Positions 1 to 38,804 of a stretch of 43,992 bases of DNA are shown in pieces. The translations under genes and the position numbers were made by a program. Below the pieces are notes generated by a model that worked only from the letters and a program-made list of their open reading frames with translations, searched no databases and was not told the origin of the DNA. Position 1 is the stretch's first letter. The number at the start of each line of letters is the position of its first letter. Source of the DNA: Chlorokybus atmophyticus (lineage: Eukaryota > Plantae > Mesostigma and Chlorokybus algae). The DNA is taken from positions 54,880-98,871 of the forward strand of contig RHPI01000975.1 of the NCBI GenBank assembly GCA_009103225.1, read 5' to 3'.

Positions 1-52
<52 letters not shown>
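1..52. repeat. (AG)n microsatellite, mirrored by (CT)n at 5797-5848
   Basis: Pure AG dinucleotide run visible at the window start. Confidence 0.98.
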
Positions 53-55
<3 letters not shown>

Positions 56-738
56 TTTTGAATCTTGTGCATTTTATTCAAAAATATCCTTTTTGTTTGT
101 GCACCGGTATATTAGTGCAAAAGCATGGCTTGCCACATTTTAGCCTTTAACGCCCCACAGCCGCCCGGCTCGACATGGCGGACACAAGTTTCAACGTTGC
201 AAAAAATGGCGTTTGCATAATCTTCCAACCGAACCAGTGAAACCGATTCCTTTTCCGGGGCGGTGCTGTTAAACACAACAGATCTTGAGGAAAACCCCAG
301 TCGGGACCCCGAAACGGGGTTGAGAACCTCGACAATCCGATACCCAAGCCGTCGTATTCTGGTAACTTTCCTCGGACATTTGGGACCCAACGGTGTCTTT
401 ACTCCGTTAAGGGCCCATACAACCACATAAAAACTGTAGTGCTAGCCCGGTTCAATGATGGGTTACCGTATTTGCCCGGATAGAAGCCCCCCCCGAATAC
501 AAGCCCCCCTGGCAAAAAAAGGTGGTGGGCCTGTGTAAACACTTACTAGCCCCCCCGACCGTTTACAAGCCCCCCTTTTCAGACCAGCTGCTCTTACCCA
601 AACTGTATGTATAGATCATGTGCATTGAGCAAGCGTATGTGTGCAATGACCAAGGCATAAACTTCAACACTGCATGCATGCACGATAATGCTGAAATGGA
701 TGGGTTCAATATAGCAACACACTCTGAACATACAGCCT

Positions 739-3118
739 CTAGACCTCACTATCTGAGTCAGTAAGGCACTCACTGTCACTACTGATCTCCTGCACCTTTT
801 TACTGCCCTCATCATCTACTGCAGACTTGGAGACTTCCTTCTCTTTCTCCATACGCGCTGCGCGCTCATTCTCCGCATCCTCCAACACTTGCTGCTCTTC
901 AAGGGGCAGGTCCTCAAAGGGTAGAAGCTCATCCTCCTCCTCTCCGACCACATGCAGATGCTCGTCGACGATGTCATCCTGGCTGCCATCCATGTCATGA
1001 CTCAAACCACATTTGACAAATGACTTCTTGATGAGTTCAACGGGAATCTTCTCCCAGCTTCTGCGAACCCACTCGCACAACTGTGCTTCATTTGGTGGGC
1101 GTTGATGCCCAGCTGGTGTGAAGGTGTGCTGGCTGGCATCCGCCATCCACATGGTGAACTGTGTAATGCCCAAGTCAGCACTTTATCATCTTACAATGCA
1201 CACACGCGCAACAGGCTTCACTTCTCTCACCTCAGCACGCATCAAACCCTTGAAAGGCTTGTTGATTGAGACGTCAAGGGGTTGGACAATCGATGTGAGA
1301 CCACCAGGAATGACTGCCATATCAATGCGCGCATGCAGAGCATCTTGTTTGACACTGTCACACAAGTGAGCACTGAAGCTATCCCACACCAACAGCGCGC
1401 GCTGACCAAACACCTGCCATACACATACACGCGCACGGTCACAAGCATGATGAGCACACATGCATGACTGACACTTGTGTGTAGACAACAACTACCCACC
1501 TGTTTGGGGCGTTTCTTCAACACCTGTTGGACGTACAACTGCGACAAGGCTTCATTCATCCATCCCTTTGGGTTGGCCCACACAATGACCCCTACTGGCT
1601 TGAGGTCTCGCGGCACGGTTGCGCGCTTGAATATGATGACAGGCAACAATTTGGAACCATCGGCCGCACATCCAAGCACCACTGTCATGTTCTTCTTCTC
1701 ATGGCCAGTACCCTTCACATGCACATCTCTACTACCACATTGATTGATGGTTGTGCCGGCAATGAGGTTGTAAGGCATAGGAGTTTCATCTACATTCAAG
1801 ATAGCAGGCAGGCCATACTTGTTGGCAGCACGCATTGTGGTGACATACCGCCGAAAGGCATCCACTTTCTCAACCACATCTTTGGGCAAGCGTTGAGCAA
1901 CTTTGGTGCGCCTTCGCGTCACCAAATCGTGCCGCCTCATGAAGCGGCGTAGCCAACCCAAGGATGCTTTGATAGTGACTTGCTCTTCTTCATCATGGTC
2001 CTCATTCCATCTTCTGATCAATTTGCGCGCATGCTCCTGTTTATAACATACAACACATTATTGCAACGTTGCACAGTCACATATACAACCAACGCATGCA
2101 AGACATGTTCATACCTGAACCATTGGTGCACTGACTGCTAGCCCTCTTGTGCGTTGGTCTATCACATACTTCATGCATCCCTCGTCAATCATAGGAGCTT
2201 CGGCTGCCTTGCCCCCACCCTTTAGCCTAAAGCGCACCTGTGAGTTGCCTTCAATGGCAGCTCTGTTTTCCACCCATCTGCGCAAGCTCTTCGCTGACAC
2301 GGTTGTCTTGCGTGCAACCTCTTTCTTGGACCAGCCTTGATCCAGCAGGCGTAAAACCTTTTGCTGCAAATAGTTGGGGAGTGAGAAGAGAGCAGCAAGT
2401 GCGGATGTGACTGACACATGTGACTGAGTGCATGCATGTGCACCGAGTGCATCCATGTGACCGAGTGCATGCATGTGCACTGCGTGCATGTGACTGCGTG
2501 CATCCATGTGACCGAGTGCATTCACGTGCACTGAGTGCAATTATGTGACTGAGTGCATGCATGTGACTGAGTGCATGCATGTGACTCGAGTACATGCATG
2601 TGACTGCGTGCATGTATGTGACTGAGTGCATGCATGTCCATCGAGTACATGCATGTGACAGAGACAATGCGCATCATGTAGCATGGCAGGAGAGCAATGA
2701 TTATATGCAATAACTGTGCAATGACTGAGTGCCGCCGCCGCCGCCGCAGCAGCAGCCGCCTGTGATGATCAGGATGCAGAAGAGCGTCACGCTGGCGGTG
2801 AGCGCCCCGTAGGCGTTAGCCGCAGGGAGGCACCTTCAGAGCGTGGCGCACAAAAGCAGAAGAAGAATATCCGCAACCAGTTCACCAACTGGCAGAAGGT
2901 GCGTGCATGCTCATGCATTCTGTCTCTCAACGTCATGCACNAATGCATGAGCATGCACGCACCTTCTGCCAGTTGGTGAACTGGTTGCGGATATTCTTCT
3001 TCTGCTTTTGTGCGCCACGCTCTGAAGGTGCCTCCCTGCGGCTAACGCCTACGGGGCGCTCACCGCCAGCATGACGCTCTTCTGCATCCAAATTATCACA
3101 GGCGGCTGCGGCGGCGGC
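739..3118 (-). CDS. Mirror copy of the pogo transposase; exons 2963-3118, 2115-2363, 1500-2036, 1231-1413, 739-1158
   Basis: Reverse complement of the + copy with a few amino-acid differences (EWVRRSW/EWVHRSW, DSFSAH/DSFNAH, GCMKYV/GCIEYV). Confidence 0.85.
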
Positions 3119-5110
3119 ACTCAGTCATTGCACAGTTATTGCATATAATCATTGCTCTCCTACCATGCTACATGATGCGCATTGTCTCTGTCACATGCAT
3201 ATACTCGATGGACATGCATGCACTCAGTCACATACATGCACGCAGTCACATGCATGTACTCGAGTCACATGCATGCACTCAGTCACATGCATGCACTCAG
3301 TCACATAATTGCACTCAGTGCACGTGAATGCACTCGGTCACATGGATGCACGCAGTCACATGCACGCAGTGCACATGCATGCACTCGGTCACATGGATGC
3401 ACTCGGTGCACATGCATGCACTCAGTCACATGTGTCAGTCACATCCGCACTTGCTGCTCTCTTCTCACTCCCCAACTATTTGCAGCAAAAGGTTTTACGC
3501 CTGCTGGATCAAGGCTGGTCCAAGAAAGAGGTTGCACGCAAGACAACCGTGTCAGCGAAAAGCTTGCGCAGATGGGTGGAAAACAGAGCTGCCATTGAAG
3601 GCAACTCACAGGTGCGCTTTAGGCTAAAGGGTGGGGGCAAGGCAGCCGAAGCTCCTATGATTGACGAGGGATGCATAGAGTATGTGATAGACCAACGCAC
3701 AAGAGGGCTAGCAGTCAGTGCACCAATGGTTCAGGTATGAACATGTCTTGCATGCGTTGGTTGTATATGTGACTGTGCAACGTTGCAATAATGTGTTGTA
3801 TGTTATGAACAGGAGCATGCGCGCAAATTGATCAGAAGATGGAATGAGGACCATGATGAAGAAGAGCAAGTTACTATCAAAGCATCCTTGGGTTGGCTAC
3901 GCCGCTTCATGAGGCGGCACGATTTGGTGACGCGAAGGCGCACCAAAGTTGCTCAACGCTTGCCCAAAGATGTGGTTGAGAAAGTGGATGCCTTTCGGCG
4001 GTATGTCACCACAATGCGTGCTGCCAACAAGTATGGCCTGCCTGCTATCTTGAATGTAGATGAAACTCCTATGCCTTACAACCTCATTGCCGGCACAACC
4101 ATCAATCAATGTGGTAGTAGAGATGTGCATGTGAAGGGTACTGGCCATGAGAAGAAGAACATGACAGTGGTGCTTGGATGTGCGGCCGATGGTTCCAAAT
4201 TGTTGCCTGTCATCATATTCAAGCGCGCAACCGTGCCGCGAGACCTCAAGCCAGTAGGGGTCATTGTGTGGGCCAACCCAAAGGGATGGATGAATGAAGC
4301 CTTGTCGCAGTTGTACGTCCAACAGGTGTTGAAGAAACGCCCCAAACAGGTGGGTAGTTGTTGTCTACATACAAGTGTCAGTCATGCATGTGTGCTCATC
4401 ATGCTTGTGACCGTGTGCGTGTATGTGTATGGCAGGTGTTTGGTCAGCGCGCGCTGTTGGTGTGGGATAGCTTCAATGCTCACTTGTGTGACAGTGTCAA
4501 ACAAGATGCTCTGCATGCGCGCATTGATATGGCAGTCATTCCTGGTGGTCTCACATCGATTGTCCAACCCCTTGACGTCTCAATCAACAAGCCTTTCAAG
4601 GGTTTGATGCGTGCTGAGGTGAGAGAAGTGAAGCCTGTTGCGCGTGTGTGCATTGTAAGATGATAAAGTGCTGACTTGGGCATTACACAGTTCACCATGT
4701 GGATGGCGGATGCCAGCCAGCACACCTTCACACCAGCTGGGCATCAACGCCCACCAAATGAAGCACAGTTGTGCGAGTGGGTTCACAGAAGCTGGGAGAA
4801 GATTCCCGTTGAACTCATCAAGAAGTCATTTGTCAAATGTGGTTTGAGTCATGACATGGATGGCAGCCAGGATGACATCGTCGACGAGCATCTGCATGTG
4901 GTCGGAGAGGAGGAGGATGAGCTTCTACCCTTTGAGGACCTGCCCCTTGAAGAGCAGCAAGTGTTGGAGGATGCGGAGAATGAGCGCGCAGCGCGTATGG
5001 AGAAAGAGAAGGAAGTCTCCAAGTCTGCAGTAGATGATGAGGGCAGTAAAAAGGTGCAGGAGATCAGTAGTGACAGTGAGTGCCTTACTGACTCAGATAG
5101 TGAGGTCTAG
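2731..5110 (+). CDS. pogo-family transposase (HTH + CENP-B-type HTH + DDE_1 + acidic tail); exons 2731-2898 (no ATG), 3486-3734, 3813-4349, 4436-4618, 4691-5110
   Basis: All four introns are GT-AG and phase 0, joining into one open frame: RNQFTNWQK|QKVLRLLDQGWSKKEVARKTTVSAKSLRRW, ASLGWLRRFMRRHDL, LNVDETP, LVWDSF, QPLDVSINKPFK. An in-frame TGA at 2722-2724 precedes exon 1, so the start codon is missing. Confidence 0.88.
3213..3435. repeat. Intronic minisatellite, ~18-bp unit GCATGCACTCAGTCACAT (mirror copy ~2414-2636)
   Basis: Tandem degenerate copies inside pogo intron 1; these produce the spurious His/Met-rich ORFs. Confidence 0.85.
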
Positions 5111-5407
5111 AGGCTGTATGTTCAGAGTGTGTTGCTATATTGAACCCATCCATTTCAGCATTATCGTGCATGCATGCAGTGTTGAAGTTTATGCCTTGGT
5201 CATTGCACACATACGCTTGCTCAATGCACATGATCTATACATACAGTTTGGGTAAGAGCAGCTGGTCTGAAAAGGGGGGCTTGTAAACGGTCGGGGGGGC
5301 TAGTAAGTGTTTACACAGGCCCACCACCTTTTTTTGCCAGGGGGGCTTGTATTCGGGGGGGGCTTCTATCCGGGCAAATACGGTAACCCATCATTGAACC
5401 GGGCTAG

Positions 5408-5793
5408 CACTACAGTTTTTATGTGGTTGTATGGGCCCTTAACGGAGTAAAGACACCGTTGGGTCCCAAATGTCCGAGGAAAGTTACCAGAATACGACGG
5501 CTTGGGTATCGGATTGTCGAGGTTCTCAACCCCGTTTCGGGGTCCCGACTGGGGTTTTCCTCAAGATCTGTTGTGTTTAACAGCACCGCCCCGGAAAAGG
5601 AATCGGTTTCACTGGTTCGGTTGGAAGATTATGCAAACGCCATTTTTTGCAACGTTGAAACTTGTGTCCGCCATGTCGAGCCGGGCGGCTGTGGGGCGTT
5701 AAAGGCTAAAATGTGGCAAGCCATGCTTTTGCACTAATATACCGGTGCACAAACAAAAAGGATATTTTTGAATAAAATGCACAAGATTCAAAA

Positions 5794-5796
<3 letters not shown>
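5408..5796 (+). mobile_element. Possible CACTA/EnSpm terminus (mirror copy ends at 441)
   Basis: Sequence begins CACTACAGTTTTT 24 bp beyond the pogo end. No partner terminus or TSD found in the window. Confidence 0.35.
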
Positions 5797-5861
<65 letters not shown>

Positions 5862-5881
5862 TCTCTTTCTCTCTCTCTCTC
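5797..5881. repeat. (CT)n microsatellite
   Basis: Visible CT run, degenerate after ~5857. Confidence 0.97.
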
Positions 5882-7010
5882 ACATATAAACATATGAAAA
5901 TGACGTAATGCATAAATGTGCAAAAGCATGCGAGCTTCGCGCATGCAATGAATGAAAGTTTTAATTATACTTGTATACATTTTATTGTGCTTGCACAGAG
6001 CGCATGCAAATGTCACAGTAGTTTGCTTGCTGGATGTGAAAAAGCTTGCACGGTTCGTGCGCAAAAAGTACAATAATACGCTTGGATTACTCAACCACAC
6101 CTAAATATATCAAAAGAGCGCATCCATGTGTATCAACAGCATGCTTGTTATTATGTATAAATTACAATTGAACATCATACTTTTACATGCACAAAGGTCT
6201 ATCAATATTATACATGGTCATTCCACCTAACAAACCATTATAATATAAGATATAATTGACAAATAATGTGCATGTCGTTTATCGATTATTTGATAGTAAC
6301 AAACAATGCAACTTGTAAGCAAACAAGGTGCATGGGTGTGTGGAAAGGCTTTGTGCGCATTAAAAAACCATTGACACTTACATTATTGCCCGCCTATGCC
6401 GACAGTAAGAGCACACACATGTGTGACAAGCCCTTTTTGATATTTTGTTACGATACATATATTTACTGCAACACACGGTTTTATAATATCGTGTGTTGCA
6501 AGTATAAAAAAAGGCATGCAAATGTCATAAACACATTTAATCCATAAATAGAGAGAGAGTGCTAACACTTGAGCACTTTTCGCGCATACATTAAAACCAA
6601 CATCTAAATACACATGTACTTGCATGCGCTACTCATGCATATATAGTACATATATGTACACATTGCATGCATGTGTAACAAATTAAATGCATCAAGCTTT
6701 GAGGAAGTTTTTAAATCTTGCGCGCTTCGTGCATATGTATTAAAAGTAGCACACATGTACTTTCACCAACCTTAATGCGCATGTGCTTATACGCAAATAA
6801 TTTGAATGGTATGTGAGTCTACATAAGATGTTATATGCTAGAATATATACGACTTGCGCACATGTGCTGATACGGATAGTGCATATGTATGACATATAAG
6901 ATGCAGGGATTGTGGCATGCACGAGAGTGTGATGCAAGCAACACACCACGAAACTGCAGAGTTGGAGGCTATACACTGACATTCACAGGTGTGTGACAAC
7001 TTGTCATGCA

Positions 7011-7206
7011 AGGGTGTGTCTCGCGGTGGGAGTATATACTCGAATGCATAAAAGTGTCGAGAACGAGAAAAGATAATGGGCAGCCTGTAGGTGCCCAAGC
7101 AGAGGACACCAAAGCTGTAATGCAGTGGTGGGTGAAGGAGACAGTGAGGAGGAAAAATTAATGTGTAGTCTTTCTAGCTTGATAGAGAGTGGTAGTTACT
7201 CAAAAA
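7011..7206. repeat. Second, diverged partial copy of the Gypsy LTR at 7876-8143
   Basis: GGGTGTGTCT...CAAGCAGAGGACACCAAAGCTGTAATG...CTTGATAGAGAGTGGTAGTTACTCAA is shared with ~7951-8141 in the same orientation. Confidence 0.8.
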
Positions 7207-7875
7207 GCTCCTGTACAAGGACGCTTGGGGAAAGCACACAGCAATTACGCAGTATTTGTTTGCGGGGGTAAATAGATAAGAGACGAGATCACACACTATT
7301 AGCACCAAATATGCAAGTGCGAGCACGCACGGTTATAACTGAACAGTGAGTGGAGTGCAAGCAAGCACTGCAGCAGTGTAAGTATGATGCAGTGTGCAGG
7401 TAGCAAATGGGATGGCTACAAGCATGAGAGCAAGAGTGTACACTTATAAGTGCATAGGCAATGCGAGTCCAGGGATAAAAACCTGTCTGTCGGTGCAGCT
7501 GGTACAGTTTTAACAACACATATACAACTATTGCTGGACTACTTGCACTGCGGGGGTTCTACTTTACTGAGCCTCATGCGCTCATCCACCCCAAAGTGGG
7601 CCGACTGGTCAATCTTGGACAATGCCGCCGCAGCTTTTGCTCCAGTACGTCCACTTGCAATTCACTGCCGACGCTACTGGTGGGAGTTGCCTAAGTGGAC
7701 TGACAGGAAGGCCCTCCACCACAGAGACTGCGTCCCCATTAATGGAGGTCAATGCTGGCAGTCGGCTGTCACGCGGCTCGCCGACATAAGGGCTGCGTCC
7801 TGATCGGCGGGGCTCAGGAGCCCAATTGTTGAACATAGTTTGACTGATCCAGATGTCAACAGGGCAACACTAGTG

Positions 7876-8143
7876 TGTTATGGGGTGCGACAGGAAAGTG
7901 CGATCGGGTCACCACTGTAATAGCTGTTGTGTAAGGAGGCCTCCACTGCAGGGTGTGTCTTGCGGTGAGAGTATGTACTCGAATGCGTACAAGTGTTGAT
8001 ACCGAGAAAAGATACCGGGCAGCCTGCAGGGGGCCAAGCAGAGGACACCAAAGCTGTAATGTCGTGGCGGTGAAGGAGACAGTGAGGAGGAAAAATATTT
8101 GTGTGGTCTTTACAGCTTGATAGAGAGTGGTAGTTACTCAACA
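7876..8143 (-). repeat. Putative 3' LTR of a minus-strand Ty3/Gypsy remnant
   Basis: Bounded by TGTT...AACA. On the minus strand it follows a purine run (GCAGGGGGGAAG, PPT-like) at the end of the integrase frame. Confidence 0.65.
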
Positions 8144-9165
8144 AGCTTCCCCCCTGCTTGATTATCGTCCTCGTGATTAGCTTGGCACCAGTGACAGCGC
8201 CATGGCAGCTCCGCGGAGGTGGTGGCAACGTCGGGGTCAACCACAGCAGGTGTGACGCCGAGGCTGCATGCTGGGTGCCAGTATTCCCAACAGGTGTTAC
8301 GCTCCTTCAACGGCTGATCGGTGGAGGCGCACCCGGTGCATTTTATTATACGAACCCGCGGGCGGGTTTTCCCAGACCTTCGATGTACGGGGGATGACAG
8401 GGAAAATAATTATCCACATGATCTGTCATAAAGGTGCCTACAGGGTTATGCAGTATTAGGGTTCCTTGAGCGCGCACCCGAGCCACCTTGTACACCATGC
8501 CGTAGTTGGCTGAGTCCAGGGTGTTGGTGGTTTGCTTCTTGCCGTAAATGTAGTCCCCTCGGTGAAACCTGCAAGTCTGAGGCACGTAGTTGCCGCTGCG
8601 CACGTTTTCGTAGCGGCGCTGGTCTCTGCGTTGCGCAGCCTTGAGGTTGTCCAGGGCAGAGGGTATTGCTGTCACGAGCAGGTTGGCGCGGGTAGTCAGC
8701 ATTTCTATCATGTGGGTGGGTTTGTTAATGATGTCCTCAACTGCCTCTGCAGCATGGCGGACGTGGAAGGGGTGCAATGGTTCCCTTCCAAACATAAGGA
8801 AGTACGAACTAAAGGAGCGCAGGGCTGCTCGGCGGGTACAGCGGTATCCGGGAGCAAGCCAAGGCAAGAATGCATCCCATTGTTCTTGCGGATGGGCAAC
8901 GCAATAATGCCGAAAAGGTTTTTGGGTTGTCTACACCATTTTATTCTGCAAGCCCTTTGGCTTGTGGGTGATCACAGCTGGTGCGGCGGTAATCGATGAG
9001 CGGTTGAAAAGGCTGTAAAATTCCCCCTAGAATTCGGTGCCCTGGTCGGTGAGGAGTTCTGCACAGGCGCCGAACCTGCTGAGTATACGATCAAGGAAGA
9101 CCAACGTCACTGTAGTGGCAAACTTGTTTGGCAGGGGGATAAGCTCGACTCTGATGCACCAGGCG
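8135..9165 (-). pseudogene. Ty3/Gypsy integrase remnant (rve core + C-terminal region with degenerate PHD finger)
   Basis: VELIPLPNKFATTVTLVFLDRILSRFGACAELLTDQGTEF, HPQAKGLAE, SYFLMFGREP. After a frameshift: KCTGCAST...RNTCWEYWHPAC...WRCHWC. In-frame stops present. Confidence 0.85.
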
Positions 9166-9425
9166 TGCGTTACCTTAGGGCAGTTGCTGCAACACTCTGT
9201 TTAAGCAGGCTCTCTGCCGCCGCTGCTGTCTTTGGCCTGGTGTGTGTGGACTGTCTGTGTCTATTAGCGCCCTGCCCTGCACTGGACTGTGATTATTTAT
9301 TCTCGAGGAGCCACGCCGTTCGAGGCGTAATTGGAGAGACAGAGAGAAGACACCATACATGACGGAGCGGCTTTAGACGCTTGCTGAAAACGGGTTCTCT
9401 GTGCTTTTGACTTGTGCGCGTCTGA

Positions 9426-9550
9426 CTTCTCCTGCCTGAGCCAAGCAGCAGCGGAAGGCAGCCCTCCAGGTTGCCAGCAGCTGCTGGCGGCAGGGAGGCT
9501 GCCTTCTGCTGCTGCAAGTAGTGCCGCTTATCGGCTCAGGCAGGAGGAAG
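9426..9550. other. ~125-nt GC-rich foldback hairpin
   Basis: CTCCTGCCTGAGCC/GGCTCAGGCAGGAG outer arms, GCAGCAGCGGAAGGCAGCC/GGCTGCCTTCTGCTGCTGC inner arms, central palindrome GCCAGCAGCTGCTGGC. Confidence 0.85.
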
Positions 9551-9769
9551 CAGCTTCTGCTGCTGAGCGCTTTGCAGGCGAGTGACAGTGGGTGGTTGCA
9601 TGAATGTCTGCCGCTGCCTTCACCGTTTGCAATTCTCTGTGCTTAGACTCTTGCATGGAGTGCTTGCCCTCATGCTGATCTGCATGCAGCCCGCAAGGCG
9701 TCTACTGCATCCGTCCGAAAAGGTAAGTAAGTACTACTTACCAAGTTAGTGACTTGGTTTGCAAGTGCC

Positions 9770-10300
9770 TACATGTCTACAACATAGCCGTTTGCATGCG
9801 ACAGCCTTTGCACGGACTGAGACACAGAGGCAGGCAACAGTCGCACTCACACTCACACCCTGCCGCATCATTGGCAGCATGGATTTCCGTCACGTTTACC
9901 AACTCATTCACACACCATCGACAGCAACTCTCTCTGCGCACACACTCACACTCTTAGTTGTCACAAGTCGGGACATGGGCAAGTTGGCACGCATTTGAAT
10001 ACGCTCACTGACGAAATGATTCCTAGGTCATCGCAGCGTCTTACGGCTGTAAACATGTACGACACCCTATATAGACTCTCTCCAACAATGTGCAGCTCAT
10101 GAGGAGGTGGCAGCGCTGCTGGGCCGCCTGCGTGTGGGACGAACAGCGATAAGTGCGTGTTGCTCCTCCTTTGTGTGAAACACGCAATGTGTTGTTCAGC
10201 ACAACACGAAGAAAAGTACTCGTTTTTGTGCTGATGATGATGATGCAGTTGCACGACAGCGGGGCTGCATAAAAGTGCGTACAAGTGCACGCGAATGAGG
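9770..10300 (-). pseudogene. Possible decayed MULE/SWIM zinc-finger fragment
   Basis: YRVSY...PTCPCPDL*QLR..VC resembles a SWIM CxC..CxH start; TRTYRCSSH and CRHL motifs lie nearby. Heavily interrupted. Confidence 0.25.
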
Positions 10301-10518
10301 ACGAGGTGCGGCGTCTTGCGTTGGAGCTGTCCGTATTATAGAGAGAGATATCTAAAGCAGCTAAAGGTATACGTACAGCGCCCAACCACAACCATCATGA
10401 GGCGTGTAGCAGATTGACAACATTGTAGTATACTGCAGGTGCAAGGTGGCACGTCACACATTACTGTAAGCATTGGTACTTCTGTTCAGGCACACGTCGT
10501 GTGTATTCTTTAAGCGCT

Positions 10519-10520
<2 letters not shown>

Positions 10521-10592
<72 letters not shown>
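10521..10592. repeat. (GA)n microsatellite
   Basis: Visible GA run. Confidence 0.97.
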
Positions 10593-10594
<2 letters not shown>

Positions 10595-12185
10595 CAACCA
10601 ATGGTAAAGTGCAGGTTGGGCATACAAAGGTAGTCTCGCACTGATGTGTATAGATGTACACGGGTTGTAGCACAGCGCCAGCTCGGTAATGGGGTTGGGT
10701 ATGCAAAGTATGGGTGGATTAGCTATCAAACTTCGGATGAAATTAAGCAAAACCGCCACCTATCACTACAACACCACCATCAAGTAAGAGGTTTTGAGAT
10801 GGCAGATGCCATGCGCGGGTCAATCGCCACCAAGATGTACCGGAGCTGATTGGCAATGTAACTGAGTTATGTGTTGGACTGTACTTATGCCCGAACCTGA
10901 ACGCTGAGTCATGCGAGGGTGCGACTTGCGCATGCATACAATTTGTGTCAGTGCTTTAAGGGCACTTGCACATGCATGTGGCTTGACGTTGCGGTGCCTC
11001 ATGAGACGGAGCAATGTTCATGCACAGAGTCACAACAATCCATGCAGTGCACTGAGCCTGTGCATGCAGACAAGACGGCCCGAGGCGAACTGTCGCATTG
11101 CACTCCAATGTTGTGTTCGTGTATGTGCGCGGGCATGCACGCGCTCGTGTGCGCGCGCGGGTGTGTCATCCCCGCTTGCTTCGCATGCTTCACGATGATC
11201 ATAAACAACACAGGAATACCGAGTTGGAGTGCTGTACTCAACAGAAGAAGCAATATCTGCGCGGGCACTTACTAGCTAGTAGTATCAGTAGCTCACTCTT
11301 CCGTATTGCAGTCACAACGCCGCGGCGGTACTTGTCGACAATCGTGATATCCACACCTGCTGGTCAGGCAACAACGCCAAGCAGCACAGCCTAGAACAGA
11401 GTATGACTTGCTGACTGACTGTGCAGTGATCTACGCAAATCATTACCAGCGCTGAATCTGAAGGACATGAGTGTAATGGTGAGTGAGGAGCAGAGGCAAG
11501 TGTTCAAGCAGAGCTTGCCTGGCACTGACCAACAGCAAGGTGTGTACACACAGACGCACGAAAGTTGCCGGGTAAATACACAATGGAGTGCGGGTACATG
11601 CGTGTGCACACACAAGGGCATGCATGCGTGTGTACGCGTATCACATGGGAGTAAGTGAGGATTGGGGATGACACAACGGCAGATGCAGCGCAGTTTCGAG
11701 CACATCATGCCATGATGGGTGCAAGCGCACAGATGCGATTGCACCCACACGCGTGTGGGTGGGGGGGTGGGGGGAAAGGTATATCTACTGCGCGCTTACA
11801 CACGCATGTTCGCGTGCAGCGGATAATTGAATAGCGCGCAGGCATGTTCGCATGCATACACGCGCATGCGCACTAGGTAAGGAAATTCAACTCGTTGGCA
11901 GCTTTGAGTGGATGATGTATCACCTTGTTTTTCTTGTAAACACAAGCTTCACAAGCCCCTTTCTAAACATGTTGATTTGCAAGTACAAAATACAAACCTG
12001 CCAGCAGCTCGATTCTAAGACGCGATGAAAGCAGGTATACCACCTTGAGATGAATGTGTTTGCTGAGCGGACACATGGAGCGGACACAGAGCACACATGC
12101 TGCAATGCATACATACATGCATACACTGTACAGTGTATGTGTGCGCGCACGTATGTACTTAATTGTCGTATGCACCTTCCCGCAC

Positions 12186-12275
12186 ACGTGTACTACAAAG
12201 TTAGCATTGGTTCAACATGTGCTGAGGTGACCACCTCAGCACATGTTGAACCAGTGCTAGCTTTGTACTACACAG
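12186..12275. other. Near-perfect ~90-nt hairpin with a 2-nt loop
   Basis: TACTACAAAGTTAGCATTGGTTCAACATGTGCTGAGGTG-AC-CACCTCAGCACATGTTGAACCAGTGCTAGCTTTGTACTA; 3 mismatches in ~39-bp arms. Confidence 0.9.
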
Positions 12276-12583
12276 AACGCAATAAAAATCGATGCCAATC
12301 AAAACCGCCAATGCCAACCACCTTGATGCACATATCGACATAACAGACCAGAACATGCACTGACGCAGAGAAATGTACGCTTCACTATTCCACTGAGCTT
12401 GTGCACTTCACTCTATGTTCTATCCACACAACTATATGAGCGGGTTGGCTTGTGCCTTCACTGTATGCCAATGGAGTACATCACAGCTTTGTGACTCAAA
12501 GCTATGCACCTGTTCCGACGCTTCCAACTTGCATGGCTAGCGCGTTACATGCAGCAGCAGCAGCGGCCAAGCCAACAAAAAAC

Positions 12584-12909
12584 TTACAGGTTGAGAGCTG
12601 TGTAGGTTTGCTGTGCGCGGTGAAAGTCACCGTCAAGGCGGATCTTGGCATCGTTGGTCTTCGTGCCCAAGTAGGGGATGACGGTGGCGATGGACACGGC
12701 AACTTCGTCGACGTGACTCTGCAGTTTGCCAATCTGTAGGGCGACGGGCTGGCCTATTAGAGGGGCGGTCTTAAGTAGGCCGGCCTTGTCGATGAGGATG
12801 TTCAGCAGCTCATGGAGCGCCTGGAAGAACTCCACCAGATCGTTGTACACTACTAGCTGGTCAATAGCGGAGTAGGGTGGCGCCACTTCGATGGACTATG
12901 TGCAGGCTC

Positions 12910-12957
<48 letters not shown>

Positions 12958-13265
12958 GTTGTTGCCACACACGCAAGCACACTTACCACGACGATGTAAT
13001 CGGCGCGAGCTCTAATTTCGGAGAAATCTGTGAAGATATCCACGAAGGGGCCCTCGTTGACGAGGATGAGGGGGCCGTTGACGAGGTTGATTGTCCTGGC
13101 CGTGACCTGCGCCTCCTTGACGCTGCCAACCATAAACTTGATCCCGCGCACCACGACGGAAGGGTCGGACCCCTGCGCCTCCACGGCTACGCTGCTGATG
13201 GCAAGCACCAGCAGCAGGCACAGGCCGGCGGAGGCGGCGCTGGTGGCGAGGCTGGGGCGATCCAT
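12584..13265 (-). CDS. Secreted ~196-aa protein, fungal UVI-1-like; exons 12987-13265 and 12584-12895
   Basis: ATG at 13265, hydrophobic signal peptide (GLCLLLVLAISSVAVEA), phase-0 intron GTAAGT...CATAG (12896-12986) containing (CT)n, TAA at 12584-12586. Motifs INLVNGPLILVNEGPFVDIFTDFSEI and LHELLNILIDKAGLLKTAPLIGQPVA match my recollection of ascomycete UVI-1 proteins (NGPLI..GQGPF..II.GF.DI; HQ.LLNILIGKAGLF..VPFIGQPVA). Confidence 0.82.
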
Positions 13266-13841
13266 CGTCACGGCGCAGCTAGCCCGACATCTGGCTTGCT
13301 GCTGTGCGCGTGGGCGTGAGGGAGCTGAGGGCACAGAAAAACAACACAGCGTCGGGTGGTGCATGCAAGTGGTGCCAGGCATGCACGACACAATGCAGCC
13401 AGCTGCAGCAGCAGCAAGCCGAAGATACACGGCACAGGACAAAGCCGCGACACAAACAGCAGAGCAGCCCCAATGTCATTTCATTGCACTTCTTTACACA
13501 GCATAGCACAGCCAACCCTACACAACCACAACCAAACAGCAGCAACCTTGGCTGCTGCTGAAGCTTGCCGCTGTGTTGCACAAGAGCGTGCGCGAACAAT
13601 GTCCCCGGTGACCTGCTAGCCAGACCAGTCACCACTGCGTTCCCCTTGGACATTGACAACAATGCAAAAAGCGCTTCGGCGCGCAGCAAAAGAACGCATC
13701 TACATAAACGCGGCCCTCACCGCGTTTAAGAATGACATGCATCATCATGTCAGAATCTTACCGGATTTGGATTGCTGGGGGTTTACCCGACCGTGCACAC
13801 GACGGCCCAATCTGCTAGTTTTGCTCAAATTAATAGACCTA

Positions 13842-13888
13842 CCGTATTTAGTTGAATACAACCCCCCCCCTTACAAACAAAGCCCCCC
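13842..13888 (+). mobile_element. Terminus of a second, related pogo-type element running into the assembly gap
   Basis: TA|CCGTATTTAGTTGAATACAACCCCCCCCC...AAGCCCCCC resembles the terminus at 466 (TA|CCGTATTTGCCCGGATAGAAGCCCCCCCCGAATACAAGCCCCC). Confidence 0.7.
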
Positions 13889-14274
13889 NNNNNNNNNNNN
13901 NNNNNNNNNNNNNNNNNNNNNNNNNNNNNNNNNNNNNNNNNNNNNNNNNNNNNNNNNNNNNNNNNNNNNNNNNNNNNNNNNNNNNNNNNNNNNNNNNNNN
14001 NNNNNNNNNNNNNNNNNNNNNNNNNNNNNNNNNNNNNNNNNNNNNNNNNNNNNNNNNNNNNNNNNNNNNNNNNNNNNNNNNNNNNNNNNNNNNNNNNNNN
14101 NNNNNNNNNNNNNNNNNNNNNNNNNNNNNNNNNNNNNNNNNNNNNNNNNNNNNNNNNNNNNNNNNNNNNNNNNNNNNNNNNNNNNNNNNNNNNNNNNNNN
14201 NNNNNNNNNNNNNNNNNNNNNNNNNNNNNNNNNNNNNNNNNNNNNNNNNNNNNNNNNNNNNNNNNNNNNNNNNN
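13889..14274. other. Assembly gap (N run)
   Basis: 386 N. Confidence 1.
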
Positions 14275-25110: not shown

Positions 25111-27172
25111 CCATTCCCTCCTTCGGTCATGTCCCTATCGACATAAGGTTTCATGCGCGAAACATGAGCCACGGTCATGGTCGCTCTGACACCGTCAGCT
25201 CGTTTCATTATATACGTCACCGGGGAAAGCTTTTCTATTACCTCGTAAGGTCCGGTCCATTTATGAATCAGTTTGTTTCCTAGCCCCCTTTTCAAAACCC
25301 GTGTTCGTACTAGTGCCGTGGTGCCAATGGTGAATGAAATAGTCTGGTGATTTGCGTCGTATTCGCGTTTTTGTCGGTTTTGAGCTTTTCGTAGTTTGCT
25401 GCAGCTTCGTCGTGGATTGTTTGTAAGAATGTGCGCGCGTATTGGGCCCATCCGGTTGCGTCTTTGGTTCCAACGTTTAACTCGTCATTGAATAAGCCTA
25501 TTTCTGCCGGGAGAACCGGTTTGCGCCCATAAAGTGCTTTGAAAGGGCTGATGTCAGTGGACTCATGTACTGAGAAGCGATATGCGGGTAAAGCCATAGG
25601 CACAACATCGTCCCAATTGTCGAGCTCTCGGCCCACGTACATTCAGATGGTGTCTTTGAGGGTTCTATTTCATCTTTCTGTCATGCCATCTGTTTCTGGA
25701 TGGTAAAAGGCTGTAAAACAATGCTGGATGTGGAGTTGTTGACATAAAATGTCCAATACTTGATTTTTAAATGAACTGCCTTGGTCAGATAAAATGCGCT
25801 CCGGGCAAGCGTGATTTGCAATGCAATATTCTAATAGAAAGGCCGCCACGGCGTTTGTCGTGGCGGCTGGGATCGCTTTTGCTATGCCCCACCGCGTTAA
25901 ATACTCCGTCATGACCAATAAGTACTGATTGCCACGTCGTGATCGAGGGAACGGGCCCATTATGTCCCATGCCACAAGCTGAAATGGGCTTTGAACATTA
26001 ATGAATTGTAGAGAGCCAGGTGGCATTTGGGACGGGGAGTTACGCGTTTAACACAGATGGCAGCTCCCCACACAGTCGTGTACGTCCTTTCGCATGTGAT
26101 GCCAAAAGAAATGTCGCCGCAGTTTTTCCAGGGTCTTGAGACGCCCAAAATGGCCGCCGCCATAGCGGTCATCATGCATGGCCTGCATGTACCGTTGCCG
26201 AAGCGCGGACGGTACTACCAGTCTCGGAGGTTCTTGGCCATTTTCTCCAAAATAATATAGAAAATCGCTCACCAATTGAAAGCGCTGTTGCTGCGGCGGC
26301 GGCTGCTCCTCGTACGGTGTCCACCAATCGTCCGTAAGTTGTTGCAGTAGGGACTGGCACCAGGTGTCCGACTGCTGCGCGTGCGCGACATCTTGCAACG
26401 AGGGTACTGGGTCGTCCTTCGTGGTACTGGGAGTCGGTGCCGGCGAGGGGTCTGCAATCATCGGGGCGGGTTCTTCTGCCCCCGCGGCTCTCGTCAGCAG
26501 CGCACAGGAAATGTCACATGCCGCGGAAAGTGGGGCTCGGGAAAGTGCATCGGCGTCCGTATTAGCACAACCGGGCCGCGGGCGAATGGAAAAAGTATAA
26601 GGTTGCATAGCCATTACCCATCGTGCCGCGCGGCCGCGTAGATCTTGTTTAGCAAAAAGTCCCTGAAGCGGTCGGTGGTCGTTTCAATAATTACGTTAGA
26701 ACCGTGCAAGTAAGAATGGAAATGTTTGAATGCCCAGATTACAGCAGCTAATTCCTTGTTTGTAGCGGAATAATTTTGTTCGGCTCCGGTCAGTGCGCGG
26801 CTAACAAGTTGGATGGGACGCATACCGGTGTCGTATTCTTGGCACAGTACGGCTCCCATCCCCACGTCTGAAGCATCAGTCCTTACGACAAATGATTTCT
26901 TAAAGTCCGGATAAGCGAGTACCGGGGCGGCACAGAGTACGGACTTCAAAGCATTAAAGGCTTTCTCGCATGATGTAGTCCACTCGAATGGGGTGTTTTT
27001 GTGCAGTAGACGACGCAACGGCTCACTGATGTCCGGCATGTTGGGAATAAAGCGAACATAGAAAGCACACATACCTAAAAACCTACGTACCGCTTTGGTA
27101 TTATGAGGTTGTGGGAAATCAGCAACGGCCAATGTTTTTGCTGGATCTGCATGAATATCGTCTCGGGATATA
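25090..27172 (-). pseudogene. Gypsy pol 3' part: RT C-terminus, RNase H, integrase (no chromodomain)
   Basis: VRRFLGMCAFYVRFI, VVRTDASDVGMGAVL, NYSATNKELAAV, DADALSR, HFGRLKT...CHLC, AWDIMGPFP, LSDQGSSF, YHPETDGMTER, WTGPYEV, HVSRMKPY. Frameshifted. Confidence 0.95.
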
Positions 27173-30216: not shown

Positions 30217-31870
30217 TTAACGGATCAAGTACTCAGCTATCAAGTCCCGTTTCAGTTTGGCACCACCAGCTGCCATGTTGGAGCCTAAGGGCACCCCGGT
30301 CTGTGCCTGCAAGTTCAGTAGGCGGATGCGCTTTGCTGCTCGCCGCCGTTCACGCCGCGACACCACCACCTCGTGCCTCCTCTCATTGTGCAGTTGGACG
30401 ACATTGTGCAGTATGGCCGTAGCTGTAATGATGAGACATGCCGTTTCAAATCGAGTCTTCACCTGTGAATGCATGCGTCAGCTGCGCATGCACATGCACA
30501 TGCATCACGTTCTCATTCATATTTGCAAGAGAAGTTGCTGCCAGCAATTATATGTTAACTCACCTTGTAAAGCAGGACACGCCAAGTGTTCTTCCACAAG
30601 CCGATGGTTTGCTCGATAGCTATGCGTGTCGCTGACTGCACGTAGTTGTATACCTCTTGCTTAGGAGGTAAGTGGTTGCCGTCGTACGGAGTCATGATCT
30701 TGGTCGTCAAAGGGTAGGCAGCATCTCCAACCAAGTACCCCATTGCAGGAAGTTCGTGATCCAGCAAGTATTGGCTAACCGGTGCAAAGTTGAACACAGT
30801 AGAGTCGTGATTGCAACCAGCACAGCCGACATGCAGATTCGTGATGTTGAATTTGTCATCACAAATAACCAAGCAATTGGTGGAGTAAAACTTCTTATAA
30901 TTGCGATAGCTCTCATCTTTTTCTTGTATCTCCACATGGGTGCCATCAACCGATCCGACGCAGCCCTTCATGCCGTTAGTATGGGTTGTGTAGCCACGCA
31001 TTTCAAAGCCAGACTGAATGGCCGCCACACCCCTTCGCCCAGCAGGACGTCCCAATGCAGCAGGCCACACCGGCCCCTCTGGAAACCTAACAGGAGCAAC
31101 TTGATCAGCCATCCACACGCATATACAATTGCCTTAAACAATATGCATGAAAGCAGCACATCAACATTAATACCTAATAAAATGATCCATCATGCGCTGC
31201 ACAATGGCGCCACATACAATGGGAACCTCTTGAGCAATGGTGGAGATGCCAAGACCGAATAACTTACTAACTGCAGCGAAGTCAGCTCCAGTAGCTAGGT
31301 AGTAAAGCACTGCAGCTACCCTGCGCTCAAGTGTGATGGCTTTGACCCAACGAGAATCCTCTACTTCTACATCAGCACGGATGGCCTCACACACAAGCTT
31401 AAATACTGCGCGCTCCAACCTAAAGTGTTTTACAAACCTCTCCTCACTAAATTGAGGCACCCAGTGATCCCACCAAAGCTTATGTCTAGGCAAAGACTGC
31501 ACACGAAGACGCAAAGGACCAGCACCCACTGCCATCATACACGTCTGACTGGATGATGATAATTGCCTGAACAACATCAGCAACACCTGCACAACCACAA
31601 CCAGAACACTACTAGCCATAGCGACAAGCATTCTATGCTGCTGCATAACTACATCATATGTTGCATCGTCCAGCAACTCCTCCTTCTGACGCATTGTTAA
31701 GAGCATCGCATTATGCCGCTGGAACAGCATCAGGATCAGACGCATCTGTGCAAGTAGAGCACGCACACCTACACACAATGACACACATCATCAACACACA
31801 TAGATTGCTAGTTGTAGCTACAAAGCATACTGCTGTTTGATGTGTAATGTTGTGTATACTTACCTTCCAT
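30217..31870 (-). CDS. Harbinger B DDE transposase (DDE_Tnp_4/HARBI1-like), intron-containing
   Basis: FVKHFRLERAVF, VAAVLYYLATG, GCVGSVDGTHV, GCNHDSTVF, LVGDAAYPL, TRIAIEQTIGLWKNTWRVL, ACLIITATAILHN. Confidence 0.92.
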
Positions 31871-32368: not shown

Positions 32369-34205
32369 ATAATGTAGCCAAGAAACTTCAGCTGCTTCAT
32401 GCCAAATTCACATTTTGATCAACGAATTTGCATTTTATGCTGTCGTAATCTTGCCACTGCCGCCTCAACGTCTCGAATGTGCTGCTCCCATGATTTCGAG
32501 AATATAATAATATTATCCACATAAATGCCTCTTTACCACGAAAAATGCCGTCCATGGTTCGTTGAAATGTTGCTGGGGCGTTGCATAAACCAAATGGCAT
32601 AACCTTAAATTGATAAAGACCCTTATCAGTGCGGAACGCCGTTTTTTCCGCGTCCTCAGGTGCCATGAGTATTTGCCAATAGCCGGATGCCAAATCAAGT
32701 TTTGAAAAATAAAAGAGCCGCCGAGTTTATCAAGAATATCCGTAATTAGCGGCGGATATCTGTCCGGTTTGGTGACAGCGTTGAGACGCCGGTAATCTAC
32801 TACCAAATGGAAATCGGTACCATTTGCTTTGGGGACGACGATCGGCTCAGTTGACCAGGGACTGGATGACGGCTCAATGATATGGTTGGCAAGCATGTCA
32901 GATACGAACTTGCAATGATTGCACTCTCTTTCGGGGATTTGCGATCTTGTGGTACTTTTATGGGCAGGCTGTCGCCGGTGACAATGTGGTGCTGTACATG
33001 ATTGCTTTGCGTTGGGTGCGTCGCGGCAATAATGTTCGACAGGTTCGCGATTAGTTTCTTGATGTCAGCACGTTCATTTTCGGTCATAGCACATTGTACT
33101 GACTTGGTTTCTGACGGCGAACGAGGTATTAGTCCCGCACGTGGATGCCAAAGTCCCTTTTCAGAGCACCAGGACTTAGTCTTCATAATCCAATCGAAAC
33201 CGATAGAAATACTGAATAATTGGCCGGGGAGTACATAAAATGTGACGGTGTCTTGTAGCAACTGATTGAAATGTACAGGGACTTTAACAAATGCGGTGGT
33301 AGTAGATGAGGCTTTGCCATCTCCAAATGTGACACGCACTGGCTGTGCACTTGTGCCAATTTCAAAACGCATACGTCGAGCAAATTCAGCATTCATAGTA
33401 CATAAAGAGGAACCGGTGTCAATCAAAGTTGTTATCGGCAATGGAGGAGTTCCTATGCCTAGACACACTGTTAAAACTGCCTTTTTCCCTCTACTAACCG
33501 CTTGTTGAGTTGCTAGCGTGGGCGCGGCCCTGTTCACACTCACGCTTAATCGTTTTCCTGCAAAATGTGGGGCGCGGGGATTGACAGCTCGGCTTCATCT
33601 TCGTCAAATTGAACGTTTTGTCGTTCCTGACGAGGTGTCTGCTGTCGGCGTGGGCGGCGGCAGTACTTGGCGACGTGACCGTAACAATCGCAGTTAAAAC
33701 AACGTGGGCGTCCCTCGACATCGCGCTCCGGAAGTCGCTGCGGCATTTGTCGTACCTGGTATGGAGTCCGACTGTCGCGCGCCGATGGTTGTGAGTACTA
33801 AGCAGACTGCGAATCCACGTCCATCGGTCTCGCCGTGTCAGTGAGGACAGGTACCGACTGTAAAGTACTGATCGGTGGCATGGTGTTAAATGTAGCCAAA
33901 GTAGGGGCGGGCTGGGCTTTGAAATTAATTAACTGCCGTGCCGTTTCAATCCTTTGAGCGATGGCGAAAGCTTCCGCCAGGGTAGCAGGTGCATGAACCA
34001 TTATTACTTGGGCATATGAAGGTTGCATGCTTGGCCATAGAAAACTCAATTTGACGTCTTCCTTCATGGTTGGGTCCGCACGGGCAATCAATTGCTTGAA
34101 TCTAATAGCAAACGCTGTAACACTCTCCGTAGCTGACTGTTTCAACTGATGTAGCTTCTGCAACGCTGCTGCAATGAAATTGGGCTGTCCAAACTGAGCT
34201 CTTAA
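32369..34205 (-). pseudogene. Gypsy gag C-terminus (CCHC knuckle), protease, RT N-terminus
   Basis: LHQLKQSATESVTAFAIRFKQL, CFNCDCYGHVAKYC, LIDTGSS, VVDYRRLNAVT, ASGYWQI, FKVMPFGLCNAPATFQR. Confidence 0.95.
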
Positions 34206-37423: not shown

Positions 37424-38804
37424 TCAAGCTATCCTCTTCCTCATCACCAACCCTCCCTGATCTCTTCCACGAGGTCGCCCACGTTGGGCGGAACCTGCTG
37501 CCGCTACGTCACCCAACAGCTGCACGTGCCTCGTGTAACGCAAGCGATCCTCAGCAGTCATGCGCACATCATCGACCCCAACCTCCTTATGAGCCATGCG
37601 GAAGTTGTGAAGTATCATGCAAGCCTCACACACCAGGTTGATGGCTTCAGGATTGCGAACCCCAATGCCCGTCAAGGTAGTGAGCCACACATTCTTTACG
37701 GATCCGATGGTGCGCTCAATGTGCATGCGCACACTGCTGAACCAGTGATTGAAGGCAGCTTCTGGTGAACCCTCAGGCTCTGTCTCAAATGGGACTATCA
37801 CAAAGGGACGGAGGGTGTAACCCGCATCTAACATCAACCATGAGGCAACCGGGAACTCACCGGCTTGGCACATCCTGCCCAATCCATTGCAAGACCACAG
37901 CGTCTTGTCGTTGTTGCAACCGGGCATGCCAGAGAAGTAGTTGGTGATGTACTCAGCACTTGTACTGGTCCGCCTGTTGCGCGTTCGGCGTGACAGGTCG
38001 TTGATGTAGAAACAGAGTGCCATCTACAATGTCGCAGAGCCCAGCGAACCCGCGCAGGTGAGGATTCCATGGCGTGCTCATTATGCTGAAACCCTGCTGT
38101 ACTTCCTCTAATATGCGCTCGTAGATGCCAACCTTGGGATGATGTGGACCTCCAGGCCAGCGCACATATAGTGGACCAACAACTCGTTTTACTGCTGTAC
38201 AGAAACGCTTCAACTCTCGCTCTGAAGTGGACAGCCCGATGCCGAAGAGATGTGAAATGCTCAGGTCACTCTGGTTGTGTGCTAGCTTGTACAGCATGGC
38301 CGCTACTCACCTTTTTAAGAAAATGGCCTTGCGCCTGTTGGTGTGCCGTCGTTGCAACCGTGGCCGCAACATATTACAGAGCAATTCGAATCCAGTACGC
38401 GAAATGCGAAAAGCCTCCACCCATCGCCATCCGCGCAAGTGCTTGGCGTGTCGGTCCCACCGCATCTCATCTCAAAAATACTTCCAGATTCTGCCAGTCA
38501 TGAAGATGCCAGTCTCCTTGGCCAGTTGCCCCAACACTAATAAAATCAAGACCACCGGCGATGCAGTAACAGGCCGATGTGCAGATAGTGATGGTGTGGT
38601 ATGCGCCATCTCAAGTAGCATTTCCTCCTCATCATGGAGCTGAACCAGCTGCAACTCAATGTATTCCATCTCTGCATCTAAAGCTCTGAGTGCTTCCAAG
38701 CGTTGCTGCATGTCAAGCATCCACATGATGACCACTACGAAGATTGCTGTGGCGGCATCCATCGGTGATAATGCAATGAGGATCTGCTTAATGCACAACA
38801 ACAT
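37424..38804 (-). pseudogene. Harbinger A DDE transposase
   Basis: EAFRISRTGFELL, AMLYKLAH, DIVDGTLF, GCNNDKTLW, MLDAGY, RMHIERTIGSVKNVW, ACMILHNF; internal stops. Confidence 0.92.

Follow-up and report, generated by a model that had tools for sequence, protein, structure and literature searches.

Within a 43,992-nucleotide stretch of the Chlorokybus atmophyticus genome (assembly GCA_009103225.1, contig RHPI01000975.1, positions 54,880 to 98,871; referred to here, at its full length, as the window), we identified an intact, previously unannotated two-exon gene of the UVI-1 family that encodes a predicted secreted protein. The family name comes from ultraviolet induction. On sequence comparison, UVI-1 is Pfam family C166 (PF17615) and a relative of HsbA and Mp1p. 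The initial annotation of this locus had proposed that the gene was transferred from a fungus to the alga. We found instead that its best matches are non-fungal, namely a Marchantia protein by E-value and two Chlorokybus proteins by identity and tree position, and that the gene is very probably a fast-evolving, strongly diverged third paralogue of a resident streptophyte family, without a separate recent capture from a fungus. It would have arisen through duplication and divergence within the algal lineage.

Structure of the gene and its predicted product

The gene is read on the minus strand and, as the initial annotation had described it, has a start codon, a predicted signal peptide, a single phase-0 intron and a stop codon, with a predicted product of 196 amino acids (93 + 103 codons; Table 1). 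The start ATG (13265-13263) lies in a strong context, with A at -3 and G at +4; the intron begins with the donor GTAAGT at 12986 and ends with the acceptor ..CATAG, and the stop codon TAA occupies 12586-12584. By simple arithmetic, (61/64)^196, the chance of an open frame of 196 codons is ~8e-5. Codons of both exons are rich in G and C at the third position (GC3 of 0.84 in exon 1 and 0.73 in exon 2), versus a GC content of 0.50 in the intron.

The signal peptide was predicted by hydropathy and the -3/-1 rule. One arginine near the N-terminus is followed by a hydrophobic core in which the 11-residue Kyte-Doolittle mean reaches up to 3.0 (residues 13-23), and the residues V-E-A that precede Q31 at the predicted cleavage site are consistent with the -3/-1 rule. 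This context resembles V-D-A followed by Q in the leaders of a Chlorokybus paralogue (P0031) and of an environmental gene (L026). The overall architecture is that of a small, single-domain, predicted secreted protein, and homologues of 159-246 amino acids carry similar leaders. The mature window protein contains no cysteine.

All searches and scores were run per exon, with exon 1 and exon 2 as separate queries. We also built a family profile without window or streptophyte rows, from fungal and metagenomic sequences alone; exon 1 scored 41.5 bits against it over profile positions 22-91 and exon 2 scored 67.9 bits over positions 105-199. Together the exons cover the whole domain in the correct order without overlapping, and therefore provide independent support for the splice model. 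The start at 13265 was picked by homology, and the true start would probably hinge on the transcription start site: two in-frame ATGs in weaker context lie upstream of it (13382 and 13364), together with a three-codon upstream open reading frame (ORF; ATG at 13290, TAG at 13281-13279).

Membership in the UVI-1 (C166) family

In Pfam, exon 2 matched C166, which is described there as a "family of unknown function", at E=3.7e-6 and 27.8 bits (gathering score 36.7). Neither exon matched the Pfam model of HsbA (PF12296), and an NCBIfam search of the exons returned nothing relevant. Two conserved motif blocks, NGPL..GQGPF and LLNILIGKAGL...P.IGQPVA, are present with substitutions; alignments confirmed that the motifs named in the initial annotation are consensus motifs of the family. 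At the 53 alignment columns conserved at >=85%, the window gene retains 30 residues versus 41 in P0031.

When 1.84 billion representatives were scanned in full with HMMER, exon 2 had 20 matches at E<=1e-3, none of them above 48% identity. Those with a name were an 899-amino-acid protein of Marchantia polymorpha (P0001, the best match by E-value at 2.9e-16), the C. atmophyticus protein P0003, a Klebsormidium nitens protein and proteins of ascomycetes, one of which is named UVI-1. Ten of the matches were scanned for domains, and all ten carry C166, with weak HsbA similarity in seven. A search with a profile seeded from streptophytes added P0031 (196 amino acids), another protein of Klebsormidium and ~70 from Pezizomycotina. 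Many of the latter bear the name UVI-1, among them the original UVI-1 of Bipolaris oryzae (Q9P338, P0048; 149.7 bits on C166). Both Q9P338 and P0031 score well above the C166 threshold, in agreement with the family name first given to the gene.

The family had been taken to be mainly fungal. Most of the retrieved members are indeed from ascomycetes, although this predominance rests on sampling tilted toward query-like sequences, with the wider HsbA superfamily outside the sample. Members were also found in Chlorokybus, in Klebsormidium (two proteins), in Marchantia and in Physcomitrella. Among 185,579 prokaryote genomes, no relative was found. A word-indexed protein search was blank for both exons, which is no sign of absence because the query is too divergent for such a search.

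Kinship with the annotated Chlorokybus paralogues

C. atmophyticus possesses two annotated members of the family, Chrsp90S09245 (P0031, 196 amino acids) and Chrsp90S09248 (P0003, 159 amino acids), which match C166 with 81.5 and 44.7 bits, respectively. P0031 is equal in length to the window protein and has a similar C-terminal sequence, with 44% identity to exon 2 and about 30-31% to exon 1. Like the window gene, the two paralogues show a V-[DE]-A context before Q at the signal-peptide cleavage site and the LID-K/R-GG/AG variant of the central motif. They differ from it in having several cysteines in place of none, and they lie close together on another scaffold, whereas the window copy stands alone among transposons and outside the annotated protein set.

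A maximum-likelihood tree was computed for the C-terminal half of the domain (90 rows, 98 columns, LG+C20; unrooted, with an unresolved backbone), and in it exon 2 grouped with P0031 and P0003 with an ultrafast bootstrap value of 100 and a Shimodaira-Hasegawa-like approximate likelihood ratio (SH-aLRT) value of 86. The terminal branch of the window gene is the longest in this tree, at 2.5 changes per site. Long-branch attraction is nevertheless an unlikely cause of the grouping, because both paralogues have short branches. The corresponding tree of the N-terminal half, at 55 columns, does not have the length needed to place exon 1; forcing exon 1 together with P0031 cost 1.2 log-likelihood units and was not rejected by the approximately unbiased (AU) test (p-AU 0.48).

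Position of the intron

The initial annotation had suggested that the microsatellite-bearing intron might be a newly gained, host-style one. We compared its position with those in 80 environmental loci, numbering residues along B. oryzae UVI-1. The loci had been retrieved with the fungal version of the central motif and are mostly of fungal type. Split matches were present in 47 of the 80 loci, with junctions at residues ~64/65 (17 cases), ~105/106 (21) and ~146/147 (30). The window intron maps elsewhere, to ~82/83, where a junction occurred in one of the 47 split loci, L026. In both the window gene and L026, exon 2 starts in phase 0, 23 residues before the conserved F that precedes LLNILI. 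Projected onto the P0031 structural model described below, the window intron lies in the linker that joins helix 3 to helix 4.

L026 (1168-1987) is an environmental two-exon gene of the family with a GC content of 0.61 and an intron of 175 nt (1462-1636, GTGAGT...CAG). Its leader, V-D-A followed across the cleavage site by Q-T-C-x-C, has the same context as that of P0031, and in the C-half tree it groups with the environmental gene call P0006 inside an unresolved crown.

Two protein models point to the same site. An internal junction of P0003 appears to fall at the position of the window intron, with the same 23-residue spacing, and P0006 starts at this spacing too, seemingly opening by reading through the end of an intron. 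The annotated 159-residue model of P0003 is without ~37 residues held by P0031, comprising the NGPL...GPF block and the following helix. The deletion ends exactly at the intron site of the window gene, and a skipped exon in this annotation is likely. Since L026 shares the site and the junctions of P0003 and P0006 appear to match it, the intron is neither private to the window gene nor recently gained.

Predicted fold and proposed function

The AlphaFold2 (AF2) model of P0031, based on an alignment of 59 rows, was all-helical, with a predicted local distance difference test score (pLDDT) of 87.9 and a predicted template-modelling score (pTM) of 0.81. Its top Foldseek matches were Afmp4p (5j5l, 5j5k) and the ligand-binding domains of Mp1p (5ecf, 5csd, 5fb7), fatty-acid binders with a five-helix bundle, with template-modelling (TM) scores of 0.83-0.89 on the target, a root-mean-square deviation (rmsd) of ~2 A, and a Foldseek probability of 1.0 to 5j5l and 5ecf. 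The PDB matches to Afmp4p, from Aspergillus fumigatus, are complexes with arachidonic or palmitic acid; Mp1p is from Talaromyces marneffei. Exon 2 modelled alone gave three long helices (pLDDT 85.3) that correspond to the last three helices of the P0031 model, and it found the same top matches (query TM score, TMq, 0.79; rmsd 1.6 A), with E-values that are non-significant for so small a fragment. P0031 and exon 2 also adjoin HsbA clusters in a language-model atlas. Searches of PDB sequences with exon 2 and with the family profile gave no credible match, and the link to Mp1p is one of fold comparison only.

In the superfamily, Mp1p and Afmp4p are known to bind fatty acids in a central cavity, and HsbA of Aspergillus oryzae adsorbs to hydrophobic polyester and recruits cutinase (PMC13537970). 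For a Physcomitrella PF17615 protein, a moss secretome study gives a mass-spectrometry-validated hydroxyproline site. From its modelled fold and leader sequence, the putative role of the window protein is likely that of a secreted binder of lipids or hydrophobic surfaces. Cleavage of the signal peptide would leave a mature protein of ~165 residues (31-196), which would fold as an Mp1p-type helical bundle. Its hydrophobic core channel might hold a fatty acid or other lipid, or the bundle might adsorb to hydrophobic surfaces. The alga is subaerial, and the protein might act at its cell wall or mucilage.

Evidence against the paralogue reading and alternative origins

Several observations weigh against the view that the window holds a working, lipid-binding paralogue of the resident family. 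Exon 2 alone remains under the gathering score of C166, exon 1 alone has no Pfam match at E<=1, and the gene keeps just 30 of the 53 strongly conserved family positions. The N-half tree, short as it is, puts exon 1 among fungal rows, and the raw identity of exon 1 is 40% to fungal proteins (Didymella, Alternaria) versus 31% to P0031. The gene was not in the protein collections searched, so that it is either unannotated or unexpressed. Lipid binding, for its part, is extrapolated from a likeness of fold at 13-20% sequence identity.

The deeper history of the family may include ancient transfer, once or repeatedly, between subaerial algae and fungi, into or out of streptophytes, with the window gene as a vertical descendant. 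We give such transfer somewhat less than an even chance; it is compatible with the paralogue reading and concerns the deeper history only. In its favor are the patchy spread of the family over Pezizomycotina, Chlorokybus, Klebsormidium, Marchantia and Physcomitrella, the lack of a relative among the prokaryote genomes, and the topology of the C-half tree. In this tree, the Chlorokybus rows, a single Beauveria protein on a long branch and the repeats of the Marchantia protein, joined by P0004, an environmental protein of two domains, lie apart from a crown (98/88) that contains the other fungal rows and both Klebsormidium proteins, one of which, P0079, shares 72% identity with an environmental sequence. 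A single clade of all streptophytes, in which the constrained group included P0004 because this protein nests among the Marchantia repeats, was not rejected against a quick tree (p-AU 0.84). However, in an informal comparison the constrained tree lies ~22 log-likelihood units below the careful free tree, and an unrooted tree of 98 columns with an unresolved backbone does not let the direction or the number of events be read. The sampling bias noted above applies here as well, and our literature searches found no paper on such a transfer.

P0079 (K. nitens KFL_008490030) lies on a 29-kb scaffold and is of fungal-type appearance; the environmental sequence that it resembles is L010. Either a separate transfer of younger date or a scaffold of contaminant origin could account for it.

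A more specific scenario, which we consider doubtful, is that the UVI-1/C166 bundle was exchanged between early terrestrial fungi and streptophyte ancestors before Chlorokybus diverged, was kept only in subaerial algae and bryophytes, and was lost in vascular plants. If this were true, the small Chlorokybus family, including the window copy, would be a molecular relic of very old contact between fungi and algae on land.

As to the state of the window copy itself, it might be a silent or decaying duplicate, i.e., a young pseudogene stranded in repeat-rich DNA with a residual open frame. Such a duplicate would account for the longest terminal branch in the tree and the loss of 23 of the 53 conserved positions, for the absence from the annotated proteome and all protein collections searched, and for a transposon-rich setting with an assembly gap 624 bp upstream. 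We regard it as improbable, given that the 196-codon frame is free of stops and frameshifts and its splice sites are intact, even though the sequence is very highly diverged. Also kept are the core motifs (NGPL, GPF, LLNILI-K-G, P-IGQP, VD and a Y near the C-terminus), the signal peptide and a strong start context; GC3 in the exons is well above the GC content of the intron, and the predicted structure of exon 2 is a confident one. Because the frame, splice sites and signal peptide are intact despite 2.5 changes per site, the data argue against neutral decay, and we infer that the window copy has undergone fast evolution under continued selection.

Less credible still is the recent, direct capture of this gene from an ascomycete followed by the gain of a host-style microsatellite intron. 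The number of Pezizomycotina UVI-1 proteins among the retrieved members, the fungal proteins at the top of the raw identities of exon 1, its position among fungal rows in a quick N-half tree, and the isolation of the gene amid transposons would all fit such an event. However, exon 2 groups with P0031 and P0003 of Chlorokybus (100/86), and the grouping of exon 1 with P0031 was not rejected. There is no close fungal donor, because no match exceeds 48% identity. Furthermore, the intron lies off the three recurrent fungal-type sites while being present in L026 and matching the apparent junction of P0003, and the recipient lineage already holds members in Chlorokybus (two), Klebsormidium (two), Marchantia and Physcomitrella.

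Genomic context

The window is rich in transposons, as the initial annotation had noted, and contains a pogo/Tc5 element duplicated in inverted orientation at 99% identity (1-5848) along with Ty3-type and Harbinger-type ORFs (Table 1). The description of the UVI-1-family gene as the only clean non-transposon gene holds among ORFs of at least 140 amino acids, the size that was checked, while other spliced genes are possible. A tblastn search found no second copy or fragment of a UVI-1-family gene in the window. No inverted repeats that might signal transposon capture were found flanking the gene, and Rfam and tRNA scans of the window were empty.

Three runs of N interrupt the window. The gene-bearing contig occupies 2942-13888, between a 1-N join at 2941 and a gap of 386 N at 13889-14274; this gap lies just 624 bp upstream of the start, which leaves the promoter and the scaffold join incompletely sequenced. 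That the gene-bearing contig is fungal contamination, joined to the algal scaffold by mistake, as this gap and the lack of any repeat of at least 100 bp shared between 2942-13888 and the contigs beyond it might suggest, is the least credible explanation, given that its nearest relatives are the annotated paralogues of the alga itself and no fungus, that the contig holds half of the 99%-identical pogo palindrome spanning the 2941 join, that AG/GA/TC tracts similar to that of the intron occur on it and elsewhere in the window (1-53, 5796-5881 and 10521-10592), and that the GC content is even, about 0.5, across the window.

A near-perfect palindrome lies at 12188-12273, ~310 bp downstream of the stop codon, with 42-nt arms that are 93% complementary and a 2-nt loop. 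A small foldback element and a 3' hairpin are both conceivable.

Table 1. Coordinates of the UVI-1-family gene, its parts and the transposon-related ORFs, in positions of the window.
Feature	Position	Strand	Evidence
UVI-1/C166-family gene, full coding region from start to stop, two exons	12584..13265	-	Exon translations; readable splice sites; both exons match the family profile in order
Exon 1, 93 codons; signal peptide and N-terminal half of the domain, including the INLVNGPLILVNEGPF motif	12987..13265	-	Translation; 41.5 bits against the fungal/metagenomic profile; aligns with the N-half of all homologues
Predicted signal peptide, residues 1-30, with predicted cleavage after V-E-A	13176..13265	-	Hydropathy scan; -3/-1 rule
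Phase-0 spliceosomal intron, 91 nt, GTAAGT...CATAG	12896..12986	-	Splice sites read in the sequence; same-site intron in L026
(AG)21 microsatellite within the intron	12914..12955	.	Tandem Repeats Finder, 21 perfect copies
Exon 2, 103 codons and TAA; C-terminal half of the domain, including ELLNILIDKAGL...PLIGQPVA	12584..12895	-	Translation; Pfam C166 match; fungal-only profile; AF2 model
Ty3-type integrase and RNase H	26048-27132		
Harbinger-type DDE_Tnp_4 ORF	30555-31118		
Ty3-type aspartyl protease	32800-33543		
Harbinger-type DDE_Tnp_4 ORF	37424-38023		

Significance and comparison with known systems

On its own, the addition of one unannotated, divergent gene to a family of unknown function is a small result. 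Beyond it, a family that has been treated as fungal, related to HsbA and to the Talaromyces virulence factor Mp1p, is present in multiple copies in the earliest-branching streptophyte alga. Our literature searches on UVI-1, PF17615 and HsbA with horizontal gene transfer (HGT) in plants turned up no account of the family in plants, save for a figure legend in a Physcomitrella preprint. If the deep history were resolved, the family could mark an ancient exchange of genes between fungi and algae, and it would be a candidate for a role at the cell surface or in lipid handling among organisms that live out of water. The locus also holds a caution for HGT screens, in that a presumed fungal best match failed once the host's own paralogues were in the search.

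The broader superfamily, to which the family is linked by fold, includes HsbA of A. oryzae (PF12296) and the Mp1p and Afmp4p domains (5j5l, 5j5k, 5ecf, 5csd, 5fb7 and 3l1n). These proteins have a helical-bundle fold in common with the models of P0031 and exon 2, and all of them are secreted; they differ from the window family in sequence, with 13-20% identity. Unlike Mp1p and Afmp4p, the C166/UVI-1 proteins have no known ligand.

Among land plants, the protein of M. polymorpha (MPTK1_4g06545, the 899-residue P0001) is a C166 member, like the Physcomitrella protein. Unlike the window gene, it has five tandem C166 domains and a variant of the central motif, LLNVVIGKHG...PFFEPIR. The protein forms a clade of its own with P0004. 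Its domains 2-5 are nearly identical, and this near-identity points to a very recent internal duplication or to concerted evolution.

Similar in architecture are the UVI-1 protein of B. oryzae (Cochliobolus miyabeanus, Q9P338) and the other ascomycete C166 proteins, which are small, secreted and single-domain (~180-220 amino acids) and have the same two motif blocks as the window gene. In the aligned C-terminal half, the identity of exon 2 to fungal members does not exceed 37%, and the introns of fungal-type genomic loci lie at the three recurrent sites given above, versus 82/83 in the window gene, the site at which it agrees with L026 and, apparently, with its own Chlorokybus paralogue.

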